Notes under the pieces: generated by a model | Told to the model about the DNA's origin: nothing | Database searches by the model: none | Seen by the model: the letters and a program-made list of their open reading frames with translations, nothing else | Virus record (IMG/VR): IMGVR_UViG_3300037110_000087 | Coordinates: 62,001 to 126,000 of that record | Direction: 5' to 3' (one strand) | Length of the DNA: 64,000 nucleotides | Position numbers and translations under genes: made by a program | Shown here: positions 21,946 to 50,646 of the stretch, in pieces | Position numbering within the stretch: position 1 is the first letter of the stretch | How the letters are laid out: each line of letters opens with the position of its first letter

Positions 21946-23991
21946 TTAGCCAACAACCACTACTCTGACGGTGTTGGAAGCAGGAGCAACCCCAAAAGTG
22001 ACTGTAATAGTGTTAGAAGTAGCTGCGGCCCAATCCGCGAGGAGAGCAACACCACCAGAAATGAGCGTAACCGCTGCGACCACATCGGTGGTTCCAAGGT
22101 TATGGGTAATAGTGTAGGTAGTAGTAACTCCATCACCGATAGTAGTAGCATATTTACCAGTGGCTCCCAGATTTGTTCTGGCTCCTGATGCAGAACCAGA
22201 ACCAGTACCACCGTTGACCACAGGAAGAGTTCCTGAGATACCTCCACTGTTGACATTATAAGGGATCTGAGCGATCGAGATAGAAGTGGTATCAATTGTA
22301 ATAACGCCAGTGGTGCTAATATACCAGACAGATCCTGCATAACTGGTACCACCCGCAAGAACCTCTATCTCTACGCCATAGAAGCCGTGGACAGTTGAAC
22401 CGGAAGGGAAATCAAGGGGTCTAGTAAGAGCGGAACCAGAAGAGTTCCAAACCCAGAGTCCATTTTGAGAAGCGGCAGTCTGGCCTGTCAGTAAAATTCT
22501 CTGGGAAGCTGATAGACCTACACCATCAATAGTAGCGCCAGGAGAGGCAATATTAATATTCGCGACAGCAACTGCAACAACAGGAACCTTTTCAACCAAG
22601 GGAGCCTGATTAAGGGCTGCAACATTAACACCAGTACCGCCTTGATTAAGAGGAACGACACCAGCAGTAATCTGGGAGAAGTTAAGGTTGGGAATATCAC
22701 CAGCAGATAAAGTAGTTCCAGAACTGACACGACCATAAGCATCAGTTGTTACCTTGGTATAAGTATTAGCAGAACCAACGGTTGGTAAGTCCGAAGCTAC
22801 TAATAGTCTCCAAGTAGGAGCACCAGAACCATTAACTGGACCAAGAAATCCAAAGCTCTGAGAAGTAGAGGTAAGCCCGGTACCACCATTACCAATAGGT
22901 AAGGTACCAGTAACAATGTTAGATCCACCACCAAGGGCAATAGCACCGTAGGCCGCTTCATTACCTGTACCATTGGAAAGTAAGGGCTGACCGGTGTTGG
23001 CATTAGACTTCACTCTCAAGGCATTAGAAACAGCCTCAAGGGTGGTAGTACCAGTTAAGTTAACATAGATACTAGAACCACTGACGGTAACGCCATTGGT
23101 TCCAGTGTAAGATGCAGACGCACCACTCTGAGCAAAGGTGATACCAGTTGAACCCAAATTGATGGTGCCAACTGTGGTAACGATCCACTGAGTAGCCTGT
23201 AGAGTAGAACCCTGGGCCACAAAGAGATAGGCACCATTCTGGATTAATCCAGGTGTATCAGGAGTAGTATTATCAAAATCATCACTTCTGGTTAGAACCC
23301 AAGGAGTGCCACCAGTACCAACCGTGGTAAGAGTATAAATACCATTATTAGCAGCTGTGGCTTCGTTCTTGACCAGGATTCTTTGGCCAATAGTTCCCAG
23401 TGTAATTCCATCAGCAGAGGGGAATGCACCATTGGCTGAAGCAGTCAGGGTCATTGGCCCGGATGCATAAGTGTTCGTGGGAAGAGGCCCTGTAGTGGCG
23501 CAAACAACATCTGACTTTGGATAAAAACCAGCAGCAATACTCTGTACATAAGCTAAGTTAACACCATCAGTCTGATTGACTGGAGCGTTGGCAATGCTAA
23601 TAGTATTGAACTGAGCATTACCACTGGAGTCCCTCAATACTAAAGTACTACCTGACGCTAGATTAGTAGCAGCATGTAATGTGGTATAATCTGCCGCTGA
23701 CATAGTTCCAGGAACAGAACCTGAAGAAGCCTGAACATTAAGGGTAGGGGCAAGAGCTGTACCTGAATTGGTTAAGGCCGTGCCAGGGGTAACGCTGGTT
23801 ACATATTGATCATCCAGAACGATAGTTCTCGTTCCAAGCTTTACCTTAGCTCGTCCTTGGGAGTCAGCGCCAGCAGAAGTATTGAACCAAATCTGACCAG
23901 TGCTAGGTGACCCAGGATCAGAGGCAAGATTCTGCAATACCACATTTAAAGCTTGATAATTACTAAAATCCAGATTGTTAATTATTTTCAT
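21946..23991 (-). CDS. Tail fibre / virion structural protein
   Basis: Two copies of the RIL(V/L)xxxxxAxxNG(I/L)(Y/W) domain; GTLP(I/V)xxGGTG repeats; C-terminal HNLGT domain. Confidence 0.8.
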   Translation of the reverse strand: MKIINNLDFSNYQALNVVLQNLASDPGSPSTGQIWFNTSAGADSQGRAKVKLGTRTIVLDDQYVTSVTPGTALTNSGTALAPTLNVQASSGSVPGTMSAADYTTLHAATNLASGSTLVLRDSSGNAQFNTISIANAPVNQTDGVNLAYVQSIAAGFYPKSDVVCATTGPLPTNTYASGPMTLTASANGAFPSADGITLGTIGQRILVKNEATAANNGIYTLTTVGTGGTPWVLTRSDDFDNTTPDTPGLIQNGAYLFVAQGSTLQATQWIVTTVGTINLGSTGITFAQSGASASYTGTNGVTVSGSSIYVNLTGTTTLEAVSNALRVKSNANTGQPLLSNGTGNEAAYGAIALGGGSNIVTGTLPIGNGGTGLTSTSQSFGFLGPVNGSGAPTWRLLVASDLPTVGSANTYTKVTTDAYGRVSSGTTLSAGDIPNLNFSQITAGVVPLNQGGTGVNVAALNQAPLVEKVPVVAVAVANINIASPGATIDGVGLSASQRILLTGQTAASQNGLWVWNSSGSALTRPLDFPSGSTVHGFYGVEIEVLAGGTSYAGSVWYISTTGVITIDTTSISIAQIPYNVNSGGISGTLPVVNGGTGSGSASGARTNLGATGKYATTIGDGVTTTYTITHNLGTTDVVAAVTLISGGVALLADWAAATSNTITVTFGVAPASNTVRVVVVG

Positions 23992-29179: not shown

Positions 29180-29686
29180 CTATCCTCTTTTCAATTTTAA
29201 CATTTTGGGCTTTAGTTTTCCTTTGATACCCATTCCTTTCAGGAAATCTTTATCAGCATCAGTGATCTCAGGCAATGGCTCAAGATCCATCAATTGATCT
29301 TTGATCCCCTCCATCATTTTCTGATGTTTCTTGATTCTTTCTTCCCTTTCCTCCCTGGTCGCGAATGTGTTGTTAGCACAGTCTATACAAATGGTTGATT
29401 CACCATCCTCACTCACACAGATTGGATCTTCTTCGGTATCCTTGATTCCACCACCACACCAGTCACAATTAATCACATCGCCCAGACCAGCTTTCTTGGC
29501 TTCCAGCATCTCTTTCAGTTCACCGCCCTGATCCTTCAGTTCTTTCTTGTCTTCTTTCTTGGTCGGATGCTTGAGGAATTTCACCAGTTCCTTATGTTCA
29601 TCAATGGCGTCCTCTAAGGACATCGAGTAAGTGTCATTCTTGATCGTGTCAGATTGCTTGACAAATGCTTTTAAATTAAGTTTCAT
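29180..29686 (-). CDS. Leader-bearing protein with CxxC..CxxC zinc finger and GIKG module
   Basis: Start MKLNLKA at 29686; CDWC...CIDC; EITDADKDFLKGMGIKGK. Confidence 0.75.
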   Translation of the reverse strand: MKLNLKAFVKQSDTIKNDTYSMSLEDAIDEHKELVKFLKHPTKKEDKKELKDQGGELKEMLEAKKAGLGDVINCDWCGGGIKDTEEDPICVSEDGESTICIDCANNTFATREEREERIKKHQKMMEGIKDQLMDLEPLPEITDADKDFLKGMGIKGKLKPKMLKLKRG

Positions 29687-29688: not shown

Positions 29689-31074
29689 TCAGTCCTTTGG
29701 ATCTAGTGTAACATTCAAGACCCATTTCTTTTTGCCAGAATCCCAGATTCGATACCAGCCCTTCTTGGCTGCTTCTTCCTGCTCATTTACACCCGCTGGA
29801 ACTCTGAAGTTGAACTTATGCTTGCGTACCTGTTGTCTCGTGTAGTAATAATCAGGCCCCAGTTCTTTTACACATTCAAAGCCCAGATCTTGATAAAGTT
29901 TCCCAGTATGCAAACGATTATCTGAGAAACTTATTATCTTCTGATATTGATTGAGTTGGAAAATCAAATTAAGTGCTTTCTGATGTGGATTCCAGGTTTT
30001 ATACTGATGGTCGAAACTCGCTCTGGTCCATTCTAGTTCGGCCCCAGGCCGTTTCTTGAAAACCCAAGCTCCGACAACCTTGGATTTATACTTCGCGCAA
30101 ATGTAATGGGTCCCACTACACTGATTATCGCCAAGATAATGGAATTTGCTTAGAAATTCCTTCACATCATTCATATGACAAAATTCATAGGTTGGCTTGA
30201 TACGCTTTTGTGATTTGGGAATTAGTTGATCGATGATAAGCTGCCAATTCTCATCTCCAAAGATCTGGAGCAAACGAATTCCGAACGATTCACATAAGAG
30301 ATGTTTATCATGATCTCTTTTGGGTTCATTCGCTACAGCTTCCGAGTGCCATCTTAATCCTTGATATTCTATCCCAGTTCTAATAGAAGGAATCCAGATG
30401 TCAAGCTCATATGGCTTTATTATGGTTTTGTCTGAAAATAAAGCGTCAGGGAAAGATTTAACAATCAATTCGAAGATCTTGTGAGCGGGGCTTGTATCCG
30501 CCGTCCCTGCAACAACACAACCACAGCTAAGAGTGAACTCCCTCAGCACATCTTTACCAACAATCTCTTTAGAATTCCCACAATCACACAAAAACCGGAA
30601 TTTCTCACCTGTTTTGAGACTGAACTCTCCTTCTGGCAATCGGTCGGGATCGAGTCGTAGCTTACCCCATTTTTCATTCAATATTAAGCGATCAGTAAAG
30701 TTACATCTCCCACAACGATGAACATTACCTCTAACTGCTGTCCGGAATGCTTTTATGGAAGTCCTACCACAATCACAGATGAACTGCACTTTCATAGCAG
30801 ATCCCTGACTCCACTCATCCAGAAGAGGTTGATCTGGATCTAATCTCAGCTCGCCCCATTTTTGTTCGAGCCAATAGCTCTTCGGTTTGTCCTCGCAATG
30901 ACCACAAGATTTTAGTTTTATAACTGCGTAGAACTGTTTGGTCGTTGTTCTACCACAGCTACAAATGAATACAAATTCAGAATGAGATCCTGGACCCCAA
31001 TCGTTGGGAAGGAGCTGATTCGGGTCAAGATGCAGGGTACCAAACTTTGTATTAAGCCATTCTTCGCGCTTCAT
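29689..31074 (-). CDS. Hef-like/very-short-patch PD-(D/E)xK homing endonuclease with three Zn-ribbon repeats and a C-terminal GNAT-like domain
   Basis: 3x K[FW]G.L.LDP...F.C.CG; YELDIWIP...GIEYQGLRWH; SFSDNRL..G.LY..LGF...YRIWDSG. Confidence 0.7.
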   Translation of the reverse strand: MKREEWLNTKFGTLHLDPNQLLPNDWGPGSHSEFVFICSCGRTTTKQFYAVIKLKSCGHCEDKPKSYWLEQKWGELRLDPDQPLLDEWSQGSAMKVQFICDCGRTSIKAFRTAVRGNVHRCGRCNFTDRLILNEKWGKLRLDPDRLPEGEFSLKTGEKFRFLCDCGNSKEIVGKDVLREFTLSCGCVVAGTADTSPAHKIFELIVKSFPDALFSDKTIIKPYELDIWIPSIRTGIEYQGLRWHSEAVANEPKRDHDKHLLCESFGIRLLQIFGDENWQLIIDQLIPKSQKRIKPTYEFCHMNDVKEFLSKFHYLGDNQCSGTHYICAKYKSKVVGAWVFKKRPGAELEWTRASFDHQYKTWNPHQKALNLIFQLNQYQKIISFSDNRLHTGKLYQDLGFECVKELGPDYYYTRQQVRKHKFNFRVPAGVNEQEEAAKKGWYRIWDSGKKKWVLNVTLDPKD

Positions 31075-31153: not shown

Positions 31154-32272
31154 TTAGAGTCTGGTGCCCTTGTTCACGCCGTTCGCGTTAACGATGACGG
31201 GTGCGACGATCTCGCGGATGAGCCAGCCACGTGCGGGGATACCCAGGACGTTCTTGTTGATTGGCTCGCTAACGAGGCCCTGGCGAACCAGGAACTGACC
31301 GAGAGTCTTGGGGTGTGAGAAGAAGTAAATCTCACCGGCCTGGAGGACGCGCAGCTGAGAGTTGATGAATGCGTCAGTGTGCATTGTCACACCAAGCAGA
31401 CTACCAAGCTCACCAGTCAGCACGATTTCATGCTTGGTGACGGGATCAAACCAGGAAGCGAAGGTAGGATCAGCTACCAGATCGTTCATGAGGTTGTTAG
31501 CCATCCAGCAATTGCTCACTGGTAGACCGCGATTCTCAACCTGATTCTTCAAGCTCTGATAGACCGCAGGGGTCAAGCTGGAGAAGAAAGTGGGAACGTT
31601 GAGGGTGGCAGCAGCCTGATCAGCCAGGGTCTTCCACTGGCGGTCTTCCTGCACCATGACCATTTCCATACCGTCCTCAAGCTTCTCTTCAAGAAGATCA
31701 GCACCGAGGCGAGCGAGTTCCTTTTCCTCAATCAGGATGTGTGACTCGATGTAATTCTCACGCAGGTAAAGCTCTCTCTGCTTGATGTGAGATACAGGGG
31801 TCTGGCCATCAGTTGACATCGAGAAAGCAAGGGTATCCTGCTTGCGGATGTAGACTTTGCACTCTTCCTGGACCTTGAGTTCACGTTCCTGAGCGAAACG
31901 GCGAAGGAAACCAGTACGGCTGATTGTGGTGCGGATTTCGTTGGTCACTTCTTCACCGATGGTGCCGAAGTTTGCAGCGGAACGGGTTAAGCTAGCGGTG
32001 CGGATATCAGAGGCTAGCTGATCCAGGGTTTCGCGAGCAGAAGCCTGCTTCTGAATCTGGCCCTTCTGAGCAGCACTAACGATGTTAGCAATCTGCTGGA
32101 AGGCATCACGCTTGTTGTAGGCGTTAATCTCGCCATTGCTGTTTGCGACGGCTTCGTTGGACTGGGAATACCCGCCCTTGGAGGTCACGCCACCAGCTTT
32201 CTGCTCTGAGGCAGGAATGTCGGTACCGGTAAGGGTAGCAACAAACGGGTTTCTTTTTGGTGTTACGGCCAT
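31154..32272 (-). CDS. Major capsid protein (HK97 fold)
   Basis: 372 aa; NGEINAYNKRD, RTGFLRRF, QEDRQW, WFDPVTKHEIVLTGELGSLLG; strong codon bias; followed by a terminator. Confidence 0.8.
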   Translation of the reverse strand: MAVTPKRNPFVATLTGTDIPASEQKAGGVTSKGGYSQSNEAVANSNGEINAYNKRDAFQQIANIVSAAQKGQIQKQASARETLDQLASDIRTASLTRSAANFGTIGEEVTNEIRTTISRTGFLRRFAQERELKVQEECKVYIRKQDTLAFSMSTDGQTPVSHIKQRELYLRENYIESHILIEEKELARLGADLLEEKLEDGMEMVMVQEDRQWKTLADQAAATLNVPTFFSSLTPAVYQSLKNQVENRGLPVSNCWMANNLMNDLVADPTFASWFDPVTKHEIVLTGELGSLLGVTMHTDAFINSQLRVLQAGEIYFFSHPKTLGQFLVRQGLVSEPINKNVLGIPARGWLIREIVAPVIVNANGVNKGTRL

Positions 32273-32841: not shown

Positions 32842-33507
32842 TTATACGTTGTATTCGATACCGAGGAAAGGATCGGCAGCGGATGGGACCGAGATGCAAA
32901 CGCCGCACTGATTGCCAGCACCAGAAGTGCCAACAAAACCACCAGCCAAGAGTTTGATTGCAGTACCAACGGTATAAGTATCGTTAGCCTTGAAGTTATT
33001 CACGTACAGGCGGGTCAGACTGCGGAAGATAGCGGCCTTACGGATGAACGCGGAAGCGGAGGGGATTGGGCTAATTCCAAGCATTGCCTGCTGCATTGGT
33101 GTCAGCTGGTAGTTGTAATTAACGGTCATTGACTCACCAGCGTGTGCAGCCACGAAAGTTACCTGATTACCGGAAACGGTGAAATCAGCACCGGCAACTG
33201 CGCCGTTCTGATTGAAGAACACCATATTGGTGATGGAGGTAGTATCGGGCAGAACCACGGTCAGAGGAGAGGTGGAAGGAACCTGTAGGGCGTAGCCATA
33301 ACGGGTGCCGAGAGTAGAGGCATGCTTATCAAGGTAGAGGAAGCCAACAAACTGGTCGGCATTGGTGCCACCAGAAAGCAACATGACTTCGTTACCGAGA
33401 GCATCAGCACCACGAACCATGGCAAGACCAGATTCAGTGGGATCTACAGAAGCATCAAGAGCAAGCTCAATGATGTTTGTGTACTGGAGACGGGAAATAT
33501 CTAGCAT
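32842..33507 (-). CDS. Putative capsid decoration/minor head protein
   Basis: Position upstream of MCP; beta-rich; C-terminal PSAADPFLGIEY. Confidence 0.55.
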   Translation of the reverse strand: MLDISRLQYTNIIELALDASVDPTESGLAMVRGADALGNEVMLLSGGTNADQFVGFLYLDKHASTLGTRYGYALQVPSTSPLTVVLPDTTSITNMVFFNQNGAVAGADFTVSGNQVTFVAAHAGESMTVNYNYQLTPMQQAMLGISPIPSASAFIRKAAIFRSLTRLYVNNFKANDTYTVGTAIKLLAGGFVGTSGAGNQCGVCISVPSAADPFLGIEYNV

Positions 33508-34887: not shown

Positions 34888-35277
34888 ATGAGCAAAAAGG
34901 ATTTTTGTGGTTGTAGAGTGACTAGAGATAGTGATGGCCAATTAATGTGGTTAGTGCGCTTCGAAAATGATGGGTTTGTTTGTCATAATACAGGTGATGA
35001 AGAGACTAAGATGTTCATTGCTGGGGAGGAATTACCTGAGACATGGTATGACCTTGATGAAATTACTTTCTTTGTTGATCCCATGGACCCCCTTACATCA
35101 ATGATGTCAAAATTACTCGACTTTTTCTCCAATGATTCCCCTAGCAGTCTGCATTATATCAAGAAGTCTATGATCTATGATGATGGTACTTCCGAGATGT
35201 TAGAATGTGGTTTTAAAGTGGTATATCAGGGAGATCTCTGGAAGATCAAGGCTGAGAGGGTCCTAGTGAATGACTAA
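34888..35277 (+). CDS. Hypothetical protein
   Basis: SD AAGGAG. Confidence 0.6.
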   Translation: MSKKDFCGCRVTRDSDGQLMWLVRFENDGFVCHNTGDEETKMFIAGEELPETWYDLDEITFFVDPMDPLTSMMSKLLDFFSNDSPSSLHYIKKSMIYDDGTSEMLECGFKVVYQGDLWKIKAERVLVND

Positions 35278-36403
35278 GGGCATAGATATTAAGTCCAAGA
35301 ATTCTGATCTACAAATCTTCGTTAAAGATGAATTAAAAACCTATGGCTGGGAGGATGTGGTACCTGTATTCTTTGCTTCCTGGGTATCTGGGGTACCCTC
35401 TGTATTAATTGGTGATCCTGGGGCATCTAAGACTACATTCCTACAGCGTTTTAGTCTGGCATTGAAGGAAAAAACTGAGACATTAGACCTCAAGTATCTG
35501 ACTCCTACTAGACTTCTTGGTATCCCAAATCCAGATAAACTACGACAGGGGATCCTAGAATATGTAGGTGGTCTGATTGCTACCCGTCCTAGGATTGTTA
35601 TCCTTGATGAATTGACCCGCTGCAATGATGGTGTACAGAGCTTGATTCTAGAGTTCATCAGAGAGGGCCGGTTAGATCAGACTTACATTGCTTGTAAGAG
35701 AGTTTGTACTGCCAATCCCCCTATGAGTGGTCTGGTCCAGGTGAGTTATCTCGACTATGCTAATGCTACCCGTATGGTCCATATCGAAGTCCCAAACCTA
35801 TCCAAGGAATTATTCCCTACCTTCGTGAAGGAATGGGGCCTGAAATGGGAGCCTACTCAAGAAGCCTGCGAATTGGCCAAATATGTGAATGGTCTAGAAC
35901 TGAAGCTACCTGATGCTGAGAAGCTCCAGATGATGACGACCACAATTCTTGGATCGTTGGTTGACTATAACATCAATGGTAGACAGCTAAGCAATCTGAT
36001 GCGTCTATTAGTGGCTACCTACACGATCGAACAGTCTGGACTCCATACCTACACCAGTGATGATATTGGTAGAGTGGCTGTCTCAATCGTGCCATTGAAG
36101 CTCACCAAGAACAAATGGACTACCCAGGCGGATGTACTAGCCTCTGAGGTCGCTAAAGATCTTCCGCTTCTGCCCTGGCAACACAAGGAGAAGGATAACA
36201 CTTCGGTGATTGCATCCCGGCAGGTTGAAGAGATCAAGAAGACCTTGGCAGAGAAACAACCCGAAGAGCTAATCGAAATCATCAAGAGCGGTGATCAGCT
36301 GAATAGCTTTATTGCCTTCGGAGAGCTAATCAAGAATATGGCTGTCAATTCCAGCTGGAATATTCCATTCGACAACTTTGACGCGATTCTTAAAGCGGTT
36401 TAG
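35270..36403 (+). CDS. MoxR-like AAA+ ATPase
   Basis: LIGDPGASKTT, ILDELTR, TANPP. Confidence 0.85.
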   Translation: MTKGIDIKSKNSDLQIFVKDELKTYGWEDVVPVFFASWVSGVPSVLIGDPGASKTTFLQRFSLALKEKTETLDLKYLTPTRLLGIPNPDKLRQGILEYVGGLIATRPRIVILDELTRCNDGVQSLILEFIREGRLDQTYIACKRVCTANPPMSGLVQVSYLDYANATRMVHIEVPNLSKELFPTFVKEWGLKWEPTQEACELAKYVNGLELKLPDAEKLQMMTTTILGSLVDYNINGRQLSNLMRLLVATYTIEQSGLHTYTSDDIGRVAVSIVPLKLTKNKWTTQADVLASEVAKDLPLLPWQHKEKDNTSVIASRQVEEIKKTLAEKQPEELIEIIKSGDQLNSFIAFGELIKNMAVNSSWNIPFDNFDAILKAV

Positions 36404-36811
36404 ATTGCGATCTTGATCTGTTCTGGATAAAAGGCAACCCAGGAATCCGCTCGATCATGAGCGGCTTCATATTCATTTCGATAAACTAACCCATCGTAAC
36501 CGTTCATAGTGGCTCTAATCTTGGGGATCAGGCCCTAGATCTTTCACACGTTGAGGGTTTTTGATATTTAAATAGACTGGTATATAGCGAATTCCTTCTT
36601 CTCCGCGAAAATCCAAACGATCGGCATGTTCATCCACCTGTGAGAGAGTACCAAAATGGGCACCCATTTTTGTATCGAATGTACCAAAGTCATGTGAAGT
36701 GACATGATATAGTTTTAAAGGTTTCCCTTTAGAATCAACCACCTTGCTGCCTGAGAACCAGAATGTATCAAGTTCGGCGGTCTTAAGAAAAGCCCTCAGG
36801 GTGAGTTTCAT
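36400..36811 (-). pseudogene. ART-PolyVal-like ADP-ribosyltransferase, leader-bearing, frameshifted
   Basis: MKLTLRA...SKVVDSKGKPLKLYHVT...YIPVYLNIKNP stops at 36515; the expected C-terminus NGYDGLVYRNEYE...SWVAFYPEQIK lies in another frame and ends at 36400. Confidence 0.7.
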
Positions 36812-36812
36812 T

Positions 36813-37202
36813 TTATCCGTCCCTATATTTTTCGCCCAGAGCGTTAAGGGCGAGAAAACCTTTATCTGTGCCTCTCCAATTCTCCCCAGTGAAGGTATCA
36901 ATCAGGAAGACTGTGTTACAAGCACAGTAAGTCTTTAGAAAGTGTTTGACTGCCGCGAAATTAAGGGACAACCTCGGCCCTATTATTTCGAAGACCCCCA
37001 ATCCATCAGTGGAGAGTCTACACCAGCCAGCAGCCTTCATCGTGTCTGCTATGTCACCGAAATCCTTGTAGTCTCTTTTGACAATTTGGTACGCCATATC
37101 ACGATGACCCTCGTAGGCACAAGGTATCATTTCGAGAGTGTTCAAATTGGCCCAGCCACACCCTGATGGTTGTTTGATATTAGCAACCAAATGGAGTTTC
37201 AT
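36813..37202 (-). CDS. Leader-bearing hypothetical protein (GW...GH...GWxR family)
   Basis: MKLHLVA start. Confidence 0.7.
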   Translation of the reverse strand: MKLHLVANIKQPSGCGWANLNTLEMIPCAYEGHRDMAYQIVKRDYKDFGDIADTMKAAGWCRLSTDGLGVFEIIGPRLSLNFAAVKHFLKTYCACNTVFLIDTFTGENWRGTDKGFLALNALGEKYRDG

Positions 37203-37624
37203 TACATATACTCCCCGGTCACCACGTTCATGATTTTCACGTGCTCAAAGATCGCGATGCTTCCGGCCTTGTCGCCTTGGACATAAGCGTCGAAGCCTTT
37301 CTTGCGCAGGGTTTCGAAGAACTCAATCGTCGCGTGGTTCATTTTCTCGTAGTGCTTTTCTCGATCGGCCTCAGTGGCGTGATAAGGATTTCTAACATCG
37401 AGCCAGCAGGTGTATAGTTCCCCTTCTTCTCCAATAAGGTTTGATTGGTACTCTTGATTCTTGGTGAACCAGATACCTTCCGGCTTTCGTTTCAATACAT
37501 TCAATTTCTTGGCCGCGCTACCATGGTACATACGACAGTTAATCTCGGTCTTAGGGAATGGACATTTGGACTGTTTGAATTCAGTCTTGAATCCTTTTCC
37601 CTTCGCAACAAAATGGAGTTTCAT
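37202..37624 (-). CDS. ART-PolyVal-like ADP-ribosyltransferase domain, leader-bearing
   Basis: MYHGS...GIWFT...YTCWLDVRNP...GFDAYV...IAIF. Confidence 0.7.
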   Translation of the reverse strand: MKLHFVAKGKGFKTEFKQSKCPFPKTEINCRMYHGSAAKKLNVLKRKPEGIWFTKNQEYQSNLIGEEGELYTCWLDVRNPYHATEADREKHYEKMNHATIEFFETLRKKGFDAYVQGDKAGSIAIFEHVKIMNVVTGEYM

Positions 37625-38400
37625 TTCTTTCTCCGATAATTAAGCTTCCGACTATACTGGTAGTGATTAGCCTCAATCCAACCCACCACCTTGTCCAGGT
37701 CCGCAGCCTTGAAATAGGGATGACTTTCATCACCCACGTACCACTCGTCGTCATACCCATTCTTTGAGACAGGTACAATATTCCGAGCAGAAGGACCCCA
37801 GAAAATAATCTGCTGCTCTTCATCACCAAAGTGGGAAACTTCGATTCCACTGGCTCGGAAAATAACAGCCTCTGTGCCATACTTGTTGGTCGGATAGTTG
37901 TAATTGATGTCAAAGGCGAAATTGTAACCAATGCCTCGTTTCCTGTTCTTAAACCAAGTGGTCAGACCAAGCTGCTCCATTTCCGCGAAGCCATACTTGA
38001 AACCGTCAGTCGCGATTGCGTAGGGGTCATCACAGAAGTGAATCAACCACCCATCCTTGAACACGCTATCGAATTCCAGATGCATGTAAGAGGGACATTC
38101 TACCGCGTCGTGGTTCATTGCATCATATTGCTTCTCATTGAAGAATTTGACCATGAGCGCATCAGGCATCGAATAGATTGAGTCGTAATTGAAATCCCCG
38201 TCTTCACCAAACAGGGTGATGAATTCACTCACTTCTTCATAAGGTTCTTCTTCTAAAAATTCCGAAAGCAAATGGGGAAAGACACTGGCTAGTTCACGCC
38301 CTTTATCAGCCTCATCCATTTCCAGATAATTCTTAAGATGCACAATTTCTTGGCAAAGGTAAGCCTGTCTGGTGATGTGGGCCTTTAGGTGTAGTCTCAT
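37621..38400 (-). CDS. Leader-bearing protein, possible ART fold
   Basis: MRLHLKA; WLIHF...GYNFAF...KYG...HFGDEEQQIIFW. Confidence 0.5.
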   Translation of the reverse strand: MRLHLKAHITRQAYLCQEIVHLKNYLEMDEADKGRELASVFPHLLSEFLEEEPYEEVSEFITLFGEDGDFNYDSIYSMPDALMVKFFNEKQYDAMNHDAVECPSYMHLEFDSVFKDGWLIHFCDDPYAIATDGFKYGFAEMEQLGLTTWFKNRKRGIGYNFAFDINYNYPTNKYGTEAVIFRASGIEVSHFGDEEQQIIFWGPSARNIVPVSKNGYDDEWYVGDESHPYFKAADLDKVVGWIEANHYQYSRKLNYRRKK

Positions 38401-38412: not shown

Positions 38413-38844
38413 TCATGCCGATCGATCCGCTTGTTCGAGCAAATATTCGGCCAATAACCGATCTTCAGGTTCCCCCAGGATTCCCTTGGACCACCGGGCC
38501 ATCATGTGAAATAGCTCGAATAATTCGCTGATGTAGACGGTATCGCTCTTGAACAAACCGAGCATCCGAGCAATTTCTGATGCCAGCTGCTGGTGCACTA
38601 GCAGATGTTCCTTGTATCGTGGGTATTCGACCTCCCGCATCAATTTCTCTTCGGTAGCGAAATGCAGGTCGAAATATATGACCAGGGAGGCAAACGAATT
38701 CCGAATTTCGGATTCTCTCACCGGGGCTTCAAATGATGCGAGAAATCGGTTGAAGATAACCACCAACTGTCGATGCTGACTATCTATCTTTTCATGACCT
38801 GTTTCACAGCAAGTATGCCAGTGAACCAAATACGGATTAACCAT
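38413..38844 (-). CDS. Bacteriohemerythrin-like protein
   Basis: TGHEKIDSQH, HFATEEKLM...YP...H...H. Confidence 0.85.
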   Translation of the reverse strand: MVNPYLVHWHTCCETGHEKIDSQHRQLVVIFNRFLASFEAPVRESEIRNSFASLVIYFDLHFATEEKLMREVEYPRYKEHLLVHQQLASEIARMLGLFKSDTVYISELFELFHMMARWSKGILGEPEDRLLAEYLLEQADRSA

Positions 38845-38874
38845 TTCCTCACCTTTCGGGATTTATTATCAAAA

Positions 38875-38918
38875 CAATAAGCGGATCTTCACCAGTGTAA
38901 CAGAGGATCCGCTTATTG
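38875..38918. repeat. 13-16-bp inverted repeat (terminator or operator)
   Basis: caataagcggatc ... gatccgcttattg. Confidence 0.8.
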
Positions 38919-38922
38919 TCAA
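38894..38922 (-). promoter_or_regulatory. sigma70-type promoter TTGACA-N17-TACACT for the hemerythrin gene
   Basis: Read on the reverse strand; lies within an inverted repeat. Confidence 0.65.
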
Positions 38923-38931
38923 GTTAAATCC

Positions 38932-40197
38932 TTAAAGTAAGATGCTAGCAAGCTCGCTCAAAGCGGAACGCTCGCCCTTGGTCAAAATGATGGAGCCAGC
39001 GATAGCACGACCCCTGAATTTCTCAGCGATGTAGGTCAAGCCATTAGTGACCCGATCCACGTAGGGATTATCGATCTGATCAGGGTCGCCGGTCAAGATA
39101 ACTTTAGTGTTCTCACCCGCTCTAGTTAGAATAGTCTTAACTTCTTTCGGGCTGAGATTCTGGGCCTCATCAATGATCATAATCTGATCAGGAATACTGC
39201 GGCCTCTGATATAAGTAAGAGGCTCAATGCTGATATATCCTGCCTCTTCCAAATTGGCTGCACTCATAGATTTCTTGTTGCAATTTCCAATGAAATCCAA
39301 GTTATCATAAATGGGCTGCATATAAGGACGTAATTTTTCATTGATATCACCAGGAAGGAATCCGATATCATTGCCCATGGGAACGACCGGACGACTGACA
39401 AGGATTTTATTATACTTCTCATCCTTTACAGTCAACTGGAGGGCTGCGGCCAGGGCCAGTAGAGTCTTTCCCGTTCCTGCCTTGCCAATTAGGGTGACCA
39501 ATTTAACATCTGGATCGAGAAGAAGAGCGAAAGCACATGCTTGTTCCGGGTTCCGGGGCTTGATGCCATAAATGGCTTCTGGAGTTACTGGGAGGACTAT
39601 TTCTCCCATACATCTACCGATTACCCATTCGTTATCACCAAACTGACAGAAAGTATTGACATGCATTCCTAGGTTGGAAGGAACGCCACCAGCATAAAGA
39701 AGGTTGACAGCGGTCTCAGCCAGATCGGGATCAGAAATCTCCGCTATTACGATCCCGCATGCGACATTATCGGCCTTGTCGGTAGTGTAGTCTTCAGCCT
39801 TGAGATCTACTGCATTGGCCTTAATTCTCAGGTTAGTATCTTTTGACACCAGGATGGCTTTGTGAGCAAGGGCACAGGAGAGGATCTTGTTGTCCACCTT
39901 GGAGCTATTGTCTAGGTCAAAATCATCAGGTAGCAGATGGAACTTTGGATCAACGAGGATCAAGCCACCACTTTCCCCGATAGGGACTCCTTCCCAAATA
40001 TTTCCGGACAGTCGTAGTTTATCCAAACTACGAAGAACTTCCCTGGCATTCCTATTCAGTTCTGAACCACCTTTTTTGAATTCATCGAGTTCCTCTACCA
40101 CACAAATCGGGATGACTAGTTTGTTATCTTCGAATTGGAAAATGGAATCTGGATCATGAAGCATCACGTTCGTATCTAGAACAAAGGTCTTTATCAT
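38932..40197 (-). CDS. phoH: PhoH-family protein (PIN + ATPase)
   Basis: LDTNV PIN start; GKAGTGKT; YIRGRS; IIDEAQN; GDPDQID. Confidence 0.95.
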   Translation of the reverse strand: MIKTFVLDTNVMLHDPDSIFQFEDNKLVIPICVVEELDEFKKGGSELNRNAREVLRSLDKLRLSGNIWEGVPIGESGGLILVDPKFHLLPDDFDLDNSSKVDNKILSCALAHKAILVSKDTNLRIKANAVDLKAEDYTTDKADNVACGIVIAEISDPDLAETAVNLLYAGGVPSNLGMHVNTFCQFGDNEWVIGRCMGEIVLPVTPEAIYGIKPRNPEQACAFALLLDPDVKLVTLIGKAGTGKTLLALAAALQLTVKDEKYNKILVSRPVVPMGNDIGFLPGDINEKLRPYMQPIYDNLDFIGNCNKKSMSAANLEEAGYISIEPLTYIRGRSIPDQIMIIDEAQNLSPKEVKTILTRAGENTKVILTGDPDQIDNPYVDRVTNGLTYIAEKFRGRAIAGSIILTKGERSALSELASILL

Positions 40198-40205
40198 TTA
40201 TACTC

Positions 40206-41507
40206 CTAAATGTTAACTATTTCTACAAGGTTGTTGTCTATCCGGTTTAACTTTGATGTCCCTCTTCTAAGAACAGTAATATTATGTCTTTTAAGAATGT
40301 TCTCAGCGTGTTCCTTCGCGTACCCCTCTAGTGTCCACTCGCCATCAGTAACAATGATCACATCAGAAGTAGGTCGTCGAGCCAAGATTTGTAGAATGGC
40401 CCCAAGATCGGTACCGAACCCAGTCTTGACATAAGCGTACTTCTGATCAAAGACAATTTCTGCAGCCATAGTACTGAATGCCCAATATTCTGCAGATTCT
40501 CCCATGGTTGATCTCACTGATTGCAGCAGACTTAAGAAGGGAAACATGGACTGAGAAACGTCGAAGATTACCAGGACATCCCGTTTGTTCTTACTTGTGA
40601 CTGCCTCTGTCCAAGGGGTGTAGATATCTAATTCCCACATGATCAGATCTTCCACATCAGGATTATGATATCCATCTTGTCTACGATCAGAGCTATCATC
40701 CTCAATTTTGGTAGATAGCTTCTGAAATTCCTCTAAAAGGTTTTGTAAACAACCTGAAGCGTTGAAGTTCCGGAACCGGTGAGAAAGAGGCTGACCATCC
40801 AAAGGAATTTTTAACTCTAGAAAAGACCCGTCACTCTCGTTACCACTTCCTCCTCCATTTCCTTCACAATTCGAATGTTTCTTGTCTTCTTTCGCTGCCT
40901 TCTCGTGTTTCACCATTGTCTCATCAGAAGGAGCTATAGGCATTGAGATGAGGAAATCACAAGCCATCTTGTAGGCGATCATTAATTTACCGAGAGTGTA
41001 GTCTTCATCTCGATACCACTCCACCGCAGCGATCTTGAACATCTCTAGCTTGGAAGTTTGTTCATCGGTCAGGGTCTTGAGGACCTTTATTCTATCAAAT
41101 CCTTCTGGTAATCTCTGTAATAACTGATACTGCCAGTCTGATTTGGCATAGTACCTTTCAATCAGATTAGACGGGATCTCATGAAATAGAGATAAATTAA
41201 TGAAAAGGTCCTCTAAGTAATTAGTCTCCCAACCTCTATTGATTAGAATACTATAACGGACATTGATATCATAATCGAATGCTAACAAGGTGCGAACCTG
41301 TGGATGAGCAGATTCATGACCTAGTACAAATGCAGCATCGTGCACATTTTTGATAAACTCATCAAAGAATCTATCTCCAATTATGACATTTCCAAACTCG
41401 TCCACTTGGGCGGTTTGCACATCTTCAGAGAATTCTATGGAATTCGTTCTCCCTATCTGTTGTTTATACAGGTAGAGTGCTTGGAGCAACAACTCGCGTC
41501 TATCCAT
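40206..41507 (-). CDS. VWA domain / HExxH metallopeptidase-like protein (MoxR partner)
   Basis: GHESAH; FDVSQSM MIDAS motif; GFGTD; IVTDGE. Confidence 0.8.
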   Translation of the reverse strand: MDRRELLLQALYLYKQQIGRTNSIEFSEDVQTAQVDEFGNVIIGDRFFDEFIKNVHDAAFVLGHESAHPQVRTLLAFDYDINVRYSILINRGWETNYLEDLFINLSLFHEIPSNLIERYYAKSDWQYQLLQRLPEGFDRIKVLKTLTDEQTSKLEMFKIAAVEWYRDEDYTLGKLMIAYKMACDFLISMPIAPSDETMVKHEKAAKEDKKHSNCEGNGGGSGNESDGSFLELKIPLDGQPLSHRFRNFNASGCLQNLLEEFQKLSTKIEDDSSDRRQDGYHNPDVEDLIMWELDIYTPWTEAVTSKNKRDVLVIFDVSQSMFPFLSLLQSVRSTMGESAEYWAFSTMAAEIVFDQKYAYVKTGFGTDLGAILQILARRPTSDVIIVTDGEWTLEGYAKEHAENILKRHNITVLRRGTSKLNRIDNNLVEIVNI

Positions 41508-41519: not shown

Positions 41520-43064
41520 CTATAGTTCTATAGCAGTCAAATAAGCATTGGATAATATACAAGATCCAGAGGCGTTTGATACCATGGCAATATCAAACCA
41601 ATAAGTAGTTCTTAAATTCAATCCGACTAATAATGTCTGGAAACAGAAGGGGATTTTCACATCTGTGACGGAGGAATTAATCAAAATTCCAGAAGGGGTA
41701 GTAGGAGGGGTAGCTCCTGAAGTCGGTGGGGTTCCTGTCCCACCTATGATACCAAGCGTCGCAGGAGCAGAAATGGAATCAGACTGGAAATTACCAGTGG
41801 CAATGATTAAGAATTTTCCAGTAGAGGCTGGAATCACCGAAAGCCCCAATCCGGCCATACCAGAGCCATTATTGAACAGGGATAAGGCTCCAGTAGTACT
41901 CATGGCGTCAGTCTTGACTAATTGATTCTGGATATTAGTAACAGTATTTACGAGAGCAGTTATTGATGAATTGGCTCCAGTTAATTGCTCGCTGACCCAA
42001 CCTTTGGAGGGGACACCAAGGGGATCTGTATCACCATCCACGGTTAATTCTGAATCATATTTTGGAACACTTCCATTCAGGGTAGTCTGACCCTGAATGA
42101 TAGTTCCCTGATTATCGCTGCCTGTTAGAACCAGATCAACGAAAGTAGCCTCATTAAAGGTGGAGTTATCAAAGGTGGAATCAGAGACAGTAATTCCAGA
42201 GACAGTACCACCACTGATTGTGGGGGTATTAATTGTGGGGGTATTAATTGTGGGGGTATTGATTGTCGCGGTGCCGAGTGTTGCGCCACTGATTGCTGTT
42301 CCACTCATTGTTCCATTACTGATAGTTGGGGTATTGATTGTGGGGGTATTTAGAACTGACCCAGTAGAGGTCTCTTCGGTGACTGTTGCACCACTGATGG
42401 CTCCACCACTAATTGTTGGGGTATTAATTACTGGTCCACTGAATGTCCCACCACTTAAATTGGTTACAGCGGTTTCCAATTCCATGTAGGTCACATAAGC
42501 ATCTCCATCACTTCCACCATCAGTCCAGATTGGAGGGAAGTTTGCACCCTGGACAATAACTGCTGCTTGGATATAGAAGGGGAAAAGGCCATTATTAGAT
42601 ATGCTGAGATAAATCCCTTTGCAGTTAACGGCCTGCCCCAATATACCAATTCTACTTTCCCCTGTTGCCAGAGAATTTTGACTCGATGCAATATTGCTTC
42701 CAAGACTATCAGTGATGGTTAATAGAAGACTACCAGAACCACTCTGGTTATAAATCTTCACTCCCGCCGATAGAGTGGTTGATATTAGAGTCTTCCCATC
42801 TTCAAGCCAAATTGGAGAAGAAACCTTTACTGTCGTCCCTACAGGAACGTAATATCCATTAGTGGGATCTAGGGAAGCGGTTGTTCCATTTGTAGTTGTC
42901 CATCCCCAGGGGAAACCAGTTCTCGAATCCACTTTAAAAAAGGGGTTCTGAACCAAGTTTACACTACTAATTTTGGTAGTTGCCAAACTTCCAGTAGAAC
43001 TGCTACCCGAATCGCTAATGGCATCAATCGCTAATGCAAGACCTTCCAGTGAGAGTTCAGTCAT
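41520..43064 (-). CDS. Fibre-like structural protein with CBM-like N-domain and INTPT pentapeptide repeats
   Basis: NLVQNPFF; repeated INTPT/ISGG(A/T). Confidence 0.7.
   Translation of the reverse strand: MTELSLEGLALAIDAISDSGSSSTGSLATTKISSVNLVQNPFFKVDSRTGFPWGWTTTNGTTASLDPTNGYYVPVGTTVKVSSPIWLEDGKTLISTTLSAGVKIYNQSGSGSLLLTITDSLGSNIASSQNSLATGESRIGILGQAVNCKGIYLSISNNGLFPFYIQAAVIVQGANFPPIWTDGGSDGDAYVTYMELETAVTNLSGGTFSGPVINTPTISGGAISGATVTEETSTGSVLNTPTINTPTISNGTMSGTAISGATLGTATINTPTINTPTINTPTISGGTVSGITVSDSTFDNSTFNEATFVDLVLTGSDNQGTIIQGQTTLNGSVPKYDSELTVDGDTDPLGVPSKGWVSEQLTGANSSITALVNTVTNIQNQLVKTDAMSTTGALSLFNNGSGMAGLGLSVIPASTGKFLIIATGNFQSDSISAPATLGIIGGTGTPPTSGATPPTTPSGILINSSVTDVKIPFCFQTLLVGLNLRTTYWFDIAMVSNASGSCILSNAYLTAIEL
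42217..42261. repeat. 3x 15-bp tandem repeat attgtgggggtatta
   Basis: Seen directly; encodes INTPT on the minus strand. Confidence 0.9.
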
Positions 43065-43065
43065 T

Positions 43066-44808
43066 TTATCCCCAATAAGTGATATAACCAGTTAAAGATG
43101 CTGTAGAGAACCAGTTGAAAACTGTGATCGTGACCGGCTGGCCTTGAACAAATGTGTTCTCGTCCACTTGACCACCAACGGTCGCAGGTCCAATATAATA
43201 AATAAGTCCTGAACTAAGGTTATAATAACCACCAAGGGAAAGTTTTGGCGTGGAAGTACTGGTAGGAACTGCGCTATAAAGGGCGCAATTGTCACTTATT
43301 GTATAATAACCAGTCTGGTTAACTGAGAAATTCACAAATCCTGAAGCATATTCATTTGTGGTGTATTGGCTATAGTCCACTATATTGAAGGCATTAGATG
43401 CCATATTCATGGTTATGTAAGAATGCCCACTACTTAATTCGGTGATGGTTGTCGTAACCGTAGTGGGAGTGCTACCGTTGCCATTAAATACTGAGTTGAA
43501 CTGGACTGTGGCAGGAGGAGTCCAAGCTGGAGGAGTCCAAGCTGGACCCTGTGGACCAGTATCTCCCTGTGGACCCTGTGGACCAACATCACCTTGGGGT
43601 CCTTGTTCACCAGTAGCACCAGTAGCACCAGTAGTGCCAGTAGTGCCAGTATCACCCACATTTCCAGTTGGTCCTGGAGGGCCAGCAGGACCAACTGGTC
43701 CGACCGGACCAGTTGGTCCCATTGAGGTAAAAACAAAAACCCAATTACCTGTTACAACACCGGTTGGTACATAATCCCAAACGACGGTTCCATCTACCAT
43801 TCCCGTCCCAGTTCCACTAGGCCCAGTTCCACTGCTACTAGAGGTACCTGCTGTGGTGCAAATATATTCAGAACCACCATTTGCGCATACCTGACCAATT
43901 GCATAACCAATATTGACAGTCCAAGGGGTATAGAGCCAATAATTTCCTGAAACTGTATCAAAATACCAGCTCCCGAGGCTCCCTAATATAGTAGTGGGCG
44001 CACCTGATCCGCCTTGGATAGGATAACCAACTGTGCCCCTTGGTCCGATGTCGCCAGTTATACCAATTGGTCCCGAAGGTCCTTGTGGTCCTGCTGGCCC
44101 TACTATTCCACCGTTAATGATATCAAAATCATTAAGGCCAGCCATATAAACGTAGGAAGGGATCACATCGCCCACAACTAGTGCAATATAGTGTAGTAGG
44201 ATATTTGAATATCCTGCATTTCCGAAGGAAATTATTACTGATCTGGTGCCAGCGGGAGCAGTAAAAGTGACGCCATAGATATTAAGCTCGGAGATCTGCG
44301 GCTGTGCCGATCCGATTGTGACCTGATTCTGATCCCTTACGGCTATGGACAAAGGGACTGTCGGACCCTCAGCCTTGATTGCGATCGTGAAATCAGTGTT
44401 TCTAATTAGTCCAGATCCATCTTCAAGAGTGATAATCTCGGTTAGTATGGTTCTGTTCATGGCTGGATTTACTACATCCAAGGTCAAGACATTCGCAGGG
44501 CTGGCAGTTTGCGATACTTGCCAATTAGAAGAAATATTTGGAATGCTTCCTGTATTGGCGACAACACAAATATAAGTAATACCAATATAGACTACTCTGT
44601 CATTAATAATATATCCAGTGGTGTTGCTCCAGACTGGAACATTACCAGAAACAGGGGTAATATTAAATCCCTTTGAATTGTCATAGGGAACCCAACCGGC
44701 AACGGGACTATAAATATTTGTATTGGCGACAAAGAAAGGGTTTCTAAGAAGGTTAAAAGAATCCTTGGTTGAAACGCTTTGATTCACACTGGCTAGAGAG
44801 AGATCCAT
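43066..44808 (-). CDS. Collagen-repeat fibre protein with CBM5/12-like modules
   Basis: [18 protein letters not shown]; [16 protein letters not shown]; about 21 Gly-X-Y triplets. Confidence 0.75.
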
Positions 44809-47874: not shown

Positions 47875-50646
47875 TTGGCCATCCTAACATCCATCAGTCT
47901 AACCGAAAAGCCTTCTAGAGCTGTCCTCCATCGCCTCCAAAACGGAGTTTTCCCTCCAGGAATCTATAATGGAGGATCGGTGACCCCTGGTTCTGGCCGG
48001 AATGTCAATATATCTCAGTTTTCTGGAAAATCCCTTGAAGGATTAACGGTATACTCTAATAGCTCGATGGTCCAACCATTGCCAGAGGTAGCATTAGCAA
48101 ATCCCACCAATCCTTCTGACCCGGCCAACTATACCACTTATTATGTCGTCCTCTATGTTCAGGAATGGTACCAGGGATGTGGCTGGGCAGATAACATGGC
48201 GGAAATCCTCGTAATGGATGCTAATTCCTGGGCTTCTTACACTAACGCCCAGTATTGTATTGTGCTAGCTACCCTCAGATTGGGCAATTCATCAATTCAA
48301 CCTAGTCTGGCCGCTACTGATGTCGATTCCACTGTCGCCCAGGTAATTGATCTACAATATCAAGCTGGAAAATTCATGCTGAGTGGGACTGCTAGCTTTA
48401 ATGGACAGATAGGTACCCTCATCATTCACAATTTGGGCGCTGCCACCAATAATTACAGAGTTTCCGTTACTCCCACAGGTACTTTGCCCTTCGGGACCGG
48501 AATCGGGGATATTTGGGTCACCAAGACCCCAAGCAGTTTTACTGTCTATACTAATGGCAATGCGGTGGGTCTGCAGTTTGACTGGTTGTTAACTACGGCC
48601 CCTTCCGATTCTGCTTCCTTTGCTGGATCTGGAAAGTTACCTTTGCCCCAGTTTTATGTCAATCCAGGGCCTCCATCACCCTCTCTTGGAAATAATTCAG
48701 ATACCTACTTTGACTCTGTTGCCAACAATTTATATATCAAAGTGGAAGGAAGCTGGTATTCGGAAAGTGGACCGGCTGGGCCTAATGGGGCAACTGGCGC
48801 TCAGGGTCCTGCTGGCCCTGCTGGCCCCCAAGGTCCAATGGGATCTCAAGGTATTGCCGGTTCTACTATTTGGAGTGGTGCTGGAGCACCTGCTAACTCC
48901 CTTGGGAAAATTAATGACTGGTATATAGATACTTCTGAAGGTGATTACTACTTAAAGACAGGTTCTAATCATTGGTCCTATCAATTCAATGCCAGAGGAC
49001 CTCTTGGCCCAACTGGTATGGCTACTAGCATTATTACCGGCCTAGGAGCACCCAACGTCAATGTTGGAAGCGTCAACGATTTGTATATCAATATCAACAC
49101 TGGTGATCTGTACAAAAAGACAGCGATTGCAACATGGTCATTACAATTCAATCTGACCGGTCCGCAGGGTTTACAAGGTCTAGCAGGATCCACTATCTAT
49201 AATGGAACTTCCGCGCCTTCGAATGCATTAGGTAATAATGGTGATTACTATCTGAACACTCTCAATAGTAATTTCTATAACAAGATCTCTGGCACTTGGT
49301 CACTGGAAATGAATTTGGTTGGTGCTGCAGGGACAACAATCTGGGATGGAACCGGAAGTCCTCAGACTACCCTTGGTGCAGTTGGTGATTATTACATAGA
49401 CAATGCCAGCCAGAGATTCTATAATAAGATAGGTCCTGCTGCTTGGTCCTTTTTATTTAATCTCCAAGGAGCAACTGGCCCACAGGGAGCAACAGGTGCT
49501 CAGGGTCCTACCGGTGCTCAGGGTCCACAAGGAATTCAAGGAACAGTTGGACTTCAGGGTCCTATTGGTTTAACTGGCCCACAGGGTACTCCTGGGTATT
49601 CCGTGTTAAATGGTGTTACGAATCCTCTCACGACTGATGGAAATCCTGGTGACTTGTATGTCAATATCGCCACCTACACTCTATTTAAGAAGATATCTCC
49701 CACTTCCTGGGCCAGTGAAGGCTCTTTCCAGGGTATTCAAGGAATTCAAGGAATTCAAGGCCCAGTTGGATCCAGCATCCTGACTGGGATTGTTGATCCT
49801 TTGTCCACTGATGGTAACGTCAATGATTTATGGCTTAATACCCTTAGTTGGAATTTATTTAAAAAGACCAATACTGGATGGGTCTCCCAAGGTAGCATTG
49901 AGGATACCCATGGGTCACTCTATGTAAATGCCACCGATACAACTCCAGTTCAGGGTGATTCTTCCCTCACTCTTGATGGGACCTTATCTTCTTATGCAGG
50001 GACTACCTGGACTCCTGCTATGAAACTGGGAAGATGGGATTCAACTATTATCGTTCCAACCTCTCCTCAGATCTACAATTCCACTACCACCACAAGCTTG
50101 GCTAGAAGTTATAGAAATATGACCATTTTTGGTAGGATTAAATCAACTCTATTCAGAACTACTTCTCCAAAGATGACACTAGCCTTACGATCAGTCTATG
50201 GTACTCAGATCTTGGCTTCCAACTTCATGGCAGTTGCCACTCAATTGACTAATTCTGGCGTGGTTTTAAGTAATAACTATGGATCCATCAATATCAACAA
50301 TGGGTTCTATGCCCAATTCTCCTCCCCGACAGTGGGTTCTATGCCTGCGATCTCATCTGGGAATGAGAGTTTCGTCATCAACCCAGACTCCGAGACATTA
50401 ATTACCATCGCTGCTCCTGTGGTGATGGACCAGGATATTCTATTTGCTTTCTATATCCAGGATGTCAGTGCCAACAATGCCATTTCATTCGCTGATTTTA
50501 GTTTCGGAACAAGTGATTTGACCTGTGGTGTTGGTGCTGGGAATTTACTATCCGGGGCACCTTCATTCATCAGTGTCTTCTCAGAGGGCATTTTCACTAC
50601 TGTTGGATCATTATTCCTTGCTAAGGTCTATAGTGATTTTAACTAA
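47875..50646 (+). CDS. Long tail fibre/baseplate protein with collagen segments and about 7 G-x-G-x-P...G..ND.Y repeats
   Basis: Alternating GPxG linkers and '[23 protein letters not shown]' type repeats. Confidence 0.75.

Follow-up and report, generated by a model that had tools for sequence, protein, structure and literature searches.

Why should four adjacent phage genes with different products all begin with the same short peptide? The question is raised by a block of four genes, here called A to D (Table 1), in the 64,000-nucleotide stretch of DNA that we analysed (the window), which corresponds to bases 62001-126000 of the IMG/VR virus record IMGVR_UViG_3300037110_000087, a phage genome of 307,124 bp that is about 98% complete; positions marked "genome" refer to the whole record. 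A sequence-only reading of the window had proposed that the four genes share a leader, that three of them carry payloads resembling ADP-ribosyltransferases (ARTs), and that such domains, elsewhere joined in large proteins, are here split into a set of small injected enzymes. We find that genes A to D are a four-gene, operon-like block in which each gene consists of a portable leader and a distinct payload, that gene B is an ART by its predicted fold, that gene A is probably a divergent ART-like protein, and that gene D is split between two reading frames.

Results

A leader common to four adjacent genes and to a wider set

Each of genes A to D opens with the pattern M-[KR]-L-x-[LF]-x-A-x-[VIL]-K, within a peptide of 11 residues that is common to all of them. 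The four genes are tightly packed, A and B overlapping in the sequence ATGA, B and C sharing one base, and C and D lying one base apart (TAATG). An initial regular expression retrieved 22 leader starts from the 307-kb genome, and a position matrix recovered about 27 open reading frame (ORF) starts with scores of at least 9 bits genome-wide, whereas no start in the reversed genome exceeded 2.3 bits. The earlier claim that the leader opens all four of these adjacent minus-strand ORFs is borne out. Additional variants of the leader adjoin ART matches in the genome.

Met1 and Ala7 are shared by all 27 leaders, position 5 is always occupied by Leu or Phe, and Leu3 is present in 25. All six Leu codons are used at positions 3 and 5 taken together, and all four Ala codons are used at position 7. 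Because synonymous codons are fully varied while the residues are fixed, we conclude that selection has acted on the leader peptide and not on the DNA. Most of the leader ATG codons are preceded by a GGAG-like ribosome-binding site at a distance of 7-12 nt, and the upstream DNA of the genes bearing the leader (tagged genes) is not conserved in this genome. Tagged genes form tandem arrays, ten of them lie in or beside the block of structural genes, and the payloads behind the leader differ in fold (ART, NUDIX, SET and unassigned). In AlphaFold models of the A and B proteins, the leader is the only long stretch with a predicted local distance difference test (pLDDT) score below 50 (residues 1-13 in B), and this predicted disorder fits a free tag.

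Public gene calls start gene B at Met32 and gene C at Met36, omitting the leader, and automatic annotation therefore hides this class of tagged genes. A tagged gene of 402 amino acids (56035-57243) has a second leader-like stretch, MELHLVATIQKK, internally at residue 153, and may have arisen when two tagged genes became fused.

Gene B has the motifs and the predicted fold of an ART

The sequence-only reading had matched genes B and D to a pattern of the ART-PolyVal family. The motifs are indeed present in both genes, those of gene B being YHGS, GIWFT, WLDVRNP and GFDAY; the V-[YW]-L element of the pattern does not apply to gene B, which has C-W-L. When gene B was aligned with the family, H34, W52-F53 and D112 fell at the His, aromatic and Asp positions, and the strand carrying WLDVRNP was also aligned. 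The catalytic triad of ART-PolyVal consists of a His on strand 1, an aromatic residue on strand 2, and an Asp on strand 5 (PMC5512222). An independent ART-PolyVal profile of our own, the one also applied to gene D below, gave gene B a score of 21 bits with filters off, and a tblastn search matched it to an annotated ART of Pseudoalteromonas phage vB_Pun_Y3.

The AlphaFold2 model of gene B has a pLDDT of 78.6. In an exhaustive VIA search with this model, the best match was chain B of the cyanophage A4 pre-ejectosome (9k3a; Z 9.0, root-mean-square deviation 2.7 Å, 110 residues), followed by MbcT, PARP2, NatT, ParT, tankyrase and AcrIF11, and all of the top 31 matches were chains of the ART superfamily (Z 9.0 to 5.0). 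Foldseek placed AcrIF11 (6kyf) first, with probabilities of 0.9-1.0. No match was found when the ART-PolyVal profile was searched against PDB sequences. On the evidence of the model, we assign gene B to the ARTs of the His-Tyr-[Glu/Asp/Gln] clade.

Gene A represents a family with a predicted ART-like fold

Gene A is composed of the leader (residues 1-11), a helical domain (residues 13-100), and an ART-like, beta-rich domain (residues 105-259). It has no family in Pfam or PHROG, a Pfam scan of all 38 aligned members of its family gave no match, and a sequence-profile search of PDB with gene A was likewise negative. An exhaustive search of representatives at the 50% identity level yielded 892 relatives, of which 75 had an E value of 1e-30 or lower; word-index homology searches with A, B and C each returned the query itself only. 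Many of the relatives are internal domains of proteins of 1400-2700 amino acids, matched at E values down to 1e-74, that also carry ART-PolyVal, NUDIX, GNAT, SprT-like and 2H domains, and because of these co-occurring domains we regard the large hosts as polyvalent proteins. ART-PolyVal is also present in 14 of the 34 relatives longer than 900 amino acids.

An alignment of 38 diverse family members showed that P103, W118, H121, F134, G137, G158, A162, F181, H190, D193, Q197, F200 and W241 are invariant, that E195 is nearly so (≥90%), and that G158-Y159-N160-F161-A162 is conserved. The arrangement of His, aromatic residue and E-x-Q that the sequence-only reading had pointed out in gene A is therefore real and is conserved in the family. 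In the AlphaFold2 model (pLDDT 89.3, predicted template modelling score 0.86), strands assigned by DSSP place H121 at the end of strand 108-122, Y159-F161 on strand 159-164, and E195-x-Q197 at the opening of strand 195-201, a placement that corresponds to the ART pattern of site residues on strands 1, 2 and 5.

When the model was compared with solved structures, ARTs made up 14 of the 16 best chains of the exhaustive search and the whole of the top 40 after re-alignment, among them Scabin, ScARP, TreX/TreTu, pertussis S1, pierisin-1, MTX, EcPltA and cholera A1, with most of each target covered. Weak matches to Tpt1 and Tne2 were also obtained. Fold searches in BFVD, ESM Atlas and AFDB clusters gave nothing significant, AFDB returning only weak pierisin-like matches. 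The comparison of predicted structures with ART folds, which the sequence-only reading had named as a check, thus came out in its favour for both proteins, the split beta-sheet fold being seen in gene A at modest Z scores. Based on the conserved residues and the model, we conclude that gene A is probably a divergent ART-like domain with a predicted active site.

Gene D is divided between two frames, and gene C has no assigned family

The sequence-only reading had treated 36400-36811 as a single gene, which does not hold: gene D terminates in frame 0 at a TAG (36517-36515) after 98 codons, and it is the +1 frame that encodes the G[YF]D motif and the C-terminal strand. The N-terminal piece, which holds ART-PolyVal profile positions 1-70, scores 32.5 bits on Pfam PF18760 (31.9 bits in the genome scan), above the cut-off of 31.2 bits, over profile positions 1-67, and it matches our own ART profile, composed of 15 ART-PolyVal segments from polyvalent proteins, at E 3.6e-9. 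Its motifs in frame 0 are YHVT, GAHFGT and VYLNIKNP, and include H36 and F53. The C-terminal piece covers PF18760 positions 101-134, with GYDG, which holds the catalytic Asp, followed by the last strand (own profile, E 2.8e-6). Because the Asp is found only in the +1 frame, the full triad is encoded in no single frame of gene D. We also considered a reading of the TAG as a sense codon and rejected it; the continuation in frame is non-homologous, which argues for a change of frame and not for recoding, and therefore no other genetic code is indicated.

Could gene D be intact in the living phage, either because the assembly or the sequencing slipped in a run of cytosines or because +1 slippage on CCC-C bypasses the break? 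Both halves are well conserved, the two frames are open together only in 36515-36537 (23 nt), this overlap contains a C4 run on the coding strand (36523-36526), and the site is covered by the source sample only. Against this, the source contig has a depth of 17 with no variant reported, neither a slow codon nor a stimulatory element was seen, and the sequence beyond the TAG lacks homology. In addition, in a 151-nt contig from an independent peat run (depth 2.3), 36500 is followed directly by 36683, so that 182 nt spanning the break are missing. The junction of this deletion lies between the near-repeats GTAACC and GTACC, and the deletion suggests that the gene is decaying. We regard an intact gene D as rather unlikely. 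Of the three ART-like payloads claimed earlier, B and D are supported by profile, B by fold, and A by fold and predicted site, but with D broken at most two are intact.

Gene C has no match in Pfam or PHROG and no homologues in the sequence search. A single relative was found, a weak paralogue within this genome (genome 224931-225275; pairwise BLASTP E 5e-8).

Polyvalent-protein domains as separate tagged genes

Several other tagged genes resemble pieces of the polyvalent proteins that carry A-like domains. The tagged NUDIX gene matches an internal domain of these proteins at E 9e-36, the tagged gene at genome 3709-4629 matches another at E 5e-49, and the tagged gene at genome 31365-32081 has a weak match to the same proteins (E 5e-9). 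Because the gene A family and the first two of these tagged genes correspond to internal domains of polyvalent proteins of 1400-2700 amino acids, the data support the view that domain types of polyvalent proteins occur here as separate tagged genes, in effect as an unbundled polyvalent protein; the sequence-only reading had anticipated such a split. Judged by homology, the recognisable tagged payloads and gene A are the domain types that are strung together in giant, DNA-delivered polyvalent proteins of other phages and conjugative elements. Ten other tagged proteins had no family among the PHROGs.

The wider tagged set includes a 450-amino-acid protein ending in ART-PolyVal (51 bits) and two further proteins with weak ART-PolyVal matches. 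A paralogue of gene B (genome 173790-174518, E 1.5e-18) has the variant leader MNQLHLKAFVKE and an Arg replacing the strand-1 His, and is not detected by PF18760. Each of A to D has a single payload (98-259 amino acids), and two or more effector domains in one polypeptide are found only in an untagged protein of 842 amino acids (Table 1), which, from its domain matches, is a small true polyvalent protein of this genome.

The possibility that the leader serves as a joint between domains or as a cleavage motif of polyvalent proteins was examined and rejected. The motif is not enriched within 150 such proteins, which contained one match of at least 12 bits compared with 0-3 in shuffled sequences.

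The leader in unrelated metagenome contigs

A metagenome scan for the leader gave mostly chance matches, with the exception of four contigs, L071, L096, L146 and L040. L071 (Ga0222713_10077320, positions 1-2440, 2.4 kb) carries five tandem leader genes, and L096 and L146 stand alongside it. The gene starts of this type are MKLHLTARIKK, MKLKLATKMNK, MKLRLTSKIAK and MKLRAKAYLRI (the last found twice), with the pattern MKL[HKR]L.A.I.K or a close variant; three of the five L071 genes have one and the same block of some 60 nt in front of them, containing TATAAT and AAGGAG, and WG-type repeats are present among the payloads. The leader of L040 is MKLHLTATIKKAG. These four contigs have almost nothing in common with the phage except the leader, and the leader therefore exists beyond this phage. 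Look-ups of the four contigs yielded only contigs of 3 kb or less, and a search of IMG/VR with three leader patterns gave chance matches only.

Genomic setting

DNA matching the phage was found in peat metagenomes. No relatives were identified by DNA match among phage records, and a search of IMG/VR with the major capsid protein returned zero matches. The window consists largely of structural genes, and the A-D block lies between the tail-fibre and head genes on the same strand (Table 1). Upstream of the block, on the strand of the tail-fibre genes, are a PIN-PhoH gene and a hemerythrin-like gene, neighbours within 38413-41507. The first was assigned to PhoH by a PHROG match and has an apparent N-terminal PIN domain, seen by eye; the hemerythrin-like gene was also identified by eye, without a family match, as was a VWA-like DxSxS motif in a 433-amino-acid neighbour in the same interval. 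A scan for promoters and terminators around the A-D block showed no excess over the shuffled expectation.

An HNH/homing-endonuclease gene (29689-31074) is flanked by a tagged gene (29180-29686) and the major capsid gene. Upstream of genome 188786, 229972 and 296813, a GC-rich hairpin is followed by TATAAT and a short untranslated stretch, and then by a tagged gene. In T4-type phages, mobile early genes are flanked by promoter-stem-loop cassettes, which this arrangement resembles.

Table 1. Features of the window and, where marked, of the whole genome
Feature	Position	Strand	Description	Basis
Gene A	37621-38400	minus	259 amino acids, leader MRLHLKAHITRQ	ORF
Gene B	37202-37624	minus	140 amino acids, leader MKLHFVAKGKGF	ORF
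Gene C	36813-37202	minus	129 amino acids, leader MKLHLVANIKQP	ORF
Gene D, N-terminal piece	36515-36811	minus	98 codons, leader MKLTLRAFLKTA	
Gene D, C-terminal piece, +1 frame	36400-36534	minus	44-codon open frame 36403-36534, stop 36400-36402	
ATPase	35270-36403		converges on gene D, 4-nt overlap	PHROG match
Head decoration	21946-23991			
Major capsid protein	31154-32272			
Virion protein	32842-33507			
Tail-fibre proteins	41520-44808 and 47875-50646			
Tagged NUDIX hydrolase	genome 37003-37497			
Tagged SET-domain protein	genome 211510-211983			
Untagged 842-amino-acid protein	genome 191713-194241		HExxH zincin-like region	MPTase-PolyVal 18.3 bits (weak, below cut-off) and ART-PolyVal 58.8 bits

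Discussion

The explanation that we consider best, and that we judge to be evenly poised between right and wrong, is that the A-D block encodes leader-addressed payloads that are loaded into the virion and injected, with B an ART, D an ART-PolyVal gene inactivated by a frameshift, and A an ART-like protein. According to this model, the leader would be an unstructured addressing peptide that binds a common receptor, most plausibly a component of the head core or one close to the portal, in the manner of the T4 capsid-targeting sequence. Once loaded into the virion, the payloads would enter the cell together with the DNA, where they may modify proteins or nucleic acids of the host at an early stage of infection, by ADP-ribosylation or in other ways, gene B acting as an ART dependent on nicotinamide adenine dinucleotide (NAD), of the His-Tyr-Asp ART-PolyVal type. 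We infer packaging and injection of the tagged proteins by analogy with the T4 sequence.

All that the T4 internal proteins have in common is an N-terminal packaging leader, by which they are brought into the prohead core, to be injected later (PMC3012670, PMC12373910), and T4 Alt is a packaged ART (PMC5512222). Like IpI-III and their relatives, the predicted proteins described here are otherwise unrelated small proteins with an N-terminal leader of about 10 residues, often encoded in tandem, and their payloads are of host- or defence-modifying kinds (PMC3012670, PMC12373910, PMC5512222). The two systems differ in that the leader sequence of this phage is unrelated to the T4 capsid-targeting sequence, that its ARTs are of the His-Tyr-Asp type and not of the Arg-Ser-Glu (R-S-E) type of Alt, and that no T4-type capsid protein, portal or gp21-type protease was detected in this phage.

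Packaging and injection are predicted for polyvalent proteins as well, and among the modifying domains of these proteins ART is the most frequent (PMC5512222, PMC9503650). The phage has the domain repertoire of the polyvalent proteins of phages and conjugative elements (Iyer et al. 2017, PMC5512222), with ART-PolyVal (PF18760), NUDIX and A-type domains, but has one domain per gene, each with its own leader, where polyvalent proteins have one giant polypeptide. Gene B may also be compared with AcrIF11 (PDB 6kyf), a phage/plasmid ART of 132 amino acids that ADP-ribosylates the type I-F CRISPR complex. Both are small, stand-alone proteins of the same fold clade (Z 6.4), but they are only 11% identical and AcrIF11 has no leader. 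The large ejection-protein chain of the A4 pre-ejectosome, the best structural match of gene B, is physically inside the capsid, and because of this match we conclude that an ART-like domain can reside there. It differs from gene B in being a domain of a podophage protein of more than 1000 amino acids. The domain that matches the gene B model spans about residues 942-1601, and the paper on the A4 pre-ejectosome names no ART domain (PMC12002296).

A number of results weigh against the model. Gene B scores 26.0 bits (E 1.8e-5) on PF18760, under the gathering cut-off of 31.2 bits, and gene D, as assembled, is a broken second ART-PolyVal gene. The structural scores of gene A are modest, VIA Z being 5.7-5.8 at best (below 6) with unrelated folds appearing from Z 3.4-3.6, and an hhalign comparison of the A family with ART-PolyVal gave a probability of 1.5%, with no profile similarity to any Pfam family. 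Pfam searches of the genome for Mu F, gp23 and the T4 portal were negative, with some controls silent, and no S77/S78 prohead protease was found by Pfam search, the S77 part being uninformative because its control matched nowhere. Several tagged genes sit among replication genes (helicase, polymerase and topoisomerase), and some are preceded by a GC hairpin and TATAAT, like individually promoted early genes, an arrangement found likewise in the unrelated contig L071.

These last results lend themselves to a different reading, a serious rival that we nonetheless think doubtful, in which the leader works as a peptide tag for some purpose other than packaging. It would then give the tagged proteins another common fate after infection, such as docking to a structure or compartment made by the phage, timed proteolysis, or an efficient start of translation, and the ARTs would act like T4 ModA/ModB rather than Alt. 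The location of tagged genes among helicase and topoisomerase genes is consistent with this reading, as are the hairpin and TATAAT directly upstream of some of them (and of tagged genes of L071 and L040) and the failure of the Pfam searches, some of whose controls were silent, to identify a head-core, protease or Mu F partner. It accounts less well for a payload repertoire that is that of DNA-delivered polyvalent proteins, for the ten tagged genes in or next to the structural block, and for an in-capsid ejection protein as the nearest solved structure of gene B.

Gene A might have the ART fold but a different catalytic activity or none, for example as an NADase, an RNA 2'-phosphotransferase-like enzyme or a binding module, and accompany the true ARTs, a possibility that we hold to be on the unlikely side. 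The pierisin-group ARTs (Scabin, ScARP, pierisin-1 and MTX) and the Rhs toxins TreX/TreTu, which are the best structural matches of gene A (Z 5.0-5.8), share 9-16% identity with it and have no relation to it at the sequence level, and gene A has an extra N-terminal helical domain. The lack of a sequence-profile link to any ART family, Z scores of just 5-6, a best Foldseek E of 0.05 with none below 0.001, and the weak matches to Tpt1 and Tne2 are compatible with a protein that is not a transferase. The active-site residues also differ, the A family having Glu-x-Gln where the best-matching pierisin-type toxins carry the R-S-E set, in which Glu is the strand-5 catalytic residue. The Q-x-E motif belongs to the pierisin group, and we assign Scabin, ScARP, pierisin-1, MTX, TreX and TreTu to the R-S-E clade. 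The R-S-E set has been described for Alt/VIP2 (PMC5512222), and gene A has a strand-1 His where the R-S-E clade has Arg. In contrast, the 38 diverse members of the A family keep the strand-1 His, the strand-2 Tyr/Phe and the strand-5 Glu with little or no variation, which points to an active NAD site.

A third account, that the shared start is a DNA-level cassette of ribosome site and first codons spread by gene-shuffling recombination with no role for the peptide, would suit the tandem arrays and the 60-nt upstream block that L071 repeats along with the leader, but it is very improbable because of the codon diversity behind the fixed Leu3, Leu5 and Ala7 residues, and the upstream DNA in this genome is not conserved.

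A bolder form of the virion-loading model, which we offer tentatively and consider somewhat less than likely, is that the leader is a general, transferable signal for loading and injection in a lineage unrelated to T4, so that one address peptide would serve about 27 effectors, including at least six ART-type enzymes and the new ART-like family. ART-PolyVal domains and packaged ARTs were already known; what is new here is the leader and its spread over about 27 genes, the polyvalent repertoire in unbundled form, and the ART-like family, as yet without a name, to which gene A belongs.

Should the leader be a loading signal, the principle of the T4 capsid-targeting sequence would have a second example, independent of the first, and it would become clear how sets of polyvalent domains can be delivered when each domain has a gene of its own that can be exchanged freely. 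The leader also provides a simple sequence rule by which the candidate injected effectors of a phage can be listed. Irrespective of the role of the leader, gene A defines a widespread and unstudied family without a Pfam model, with a predicted ART-like fold, that occurs beside ART-PolyVal in polyvalent proteins, and gene B adds a predicted stand-alone ART of 140 amino acids that is comparable in size and fold to the anti-CRISPR protein AcrIF11.

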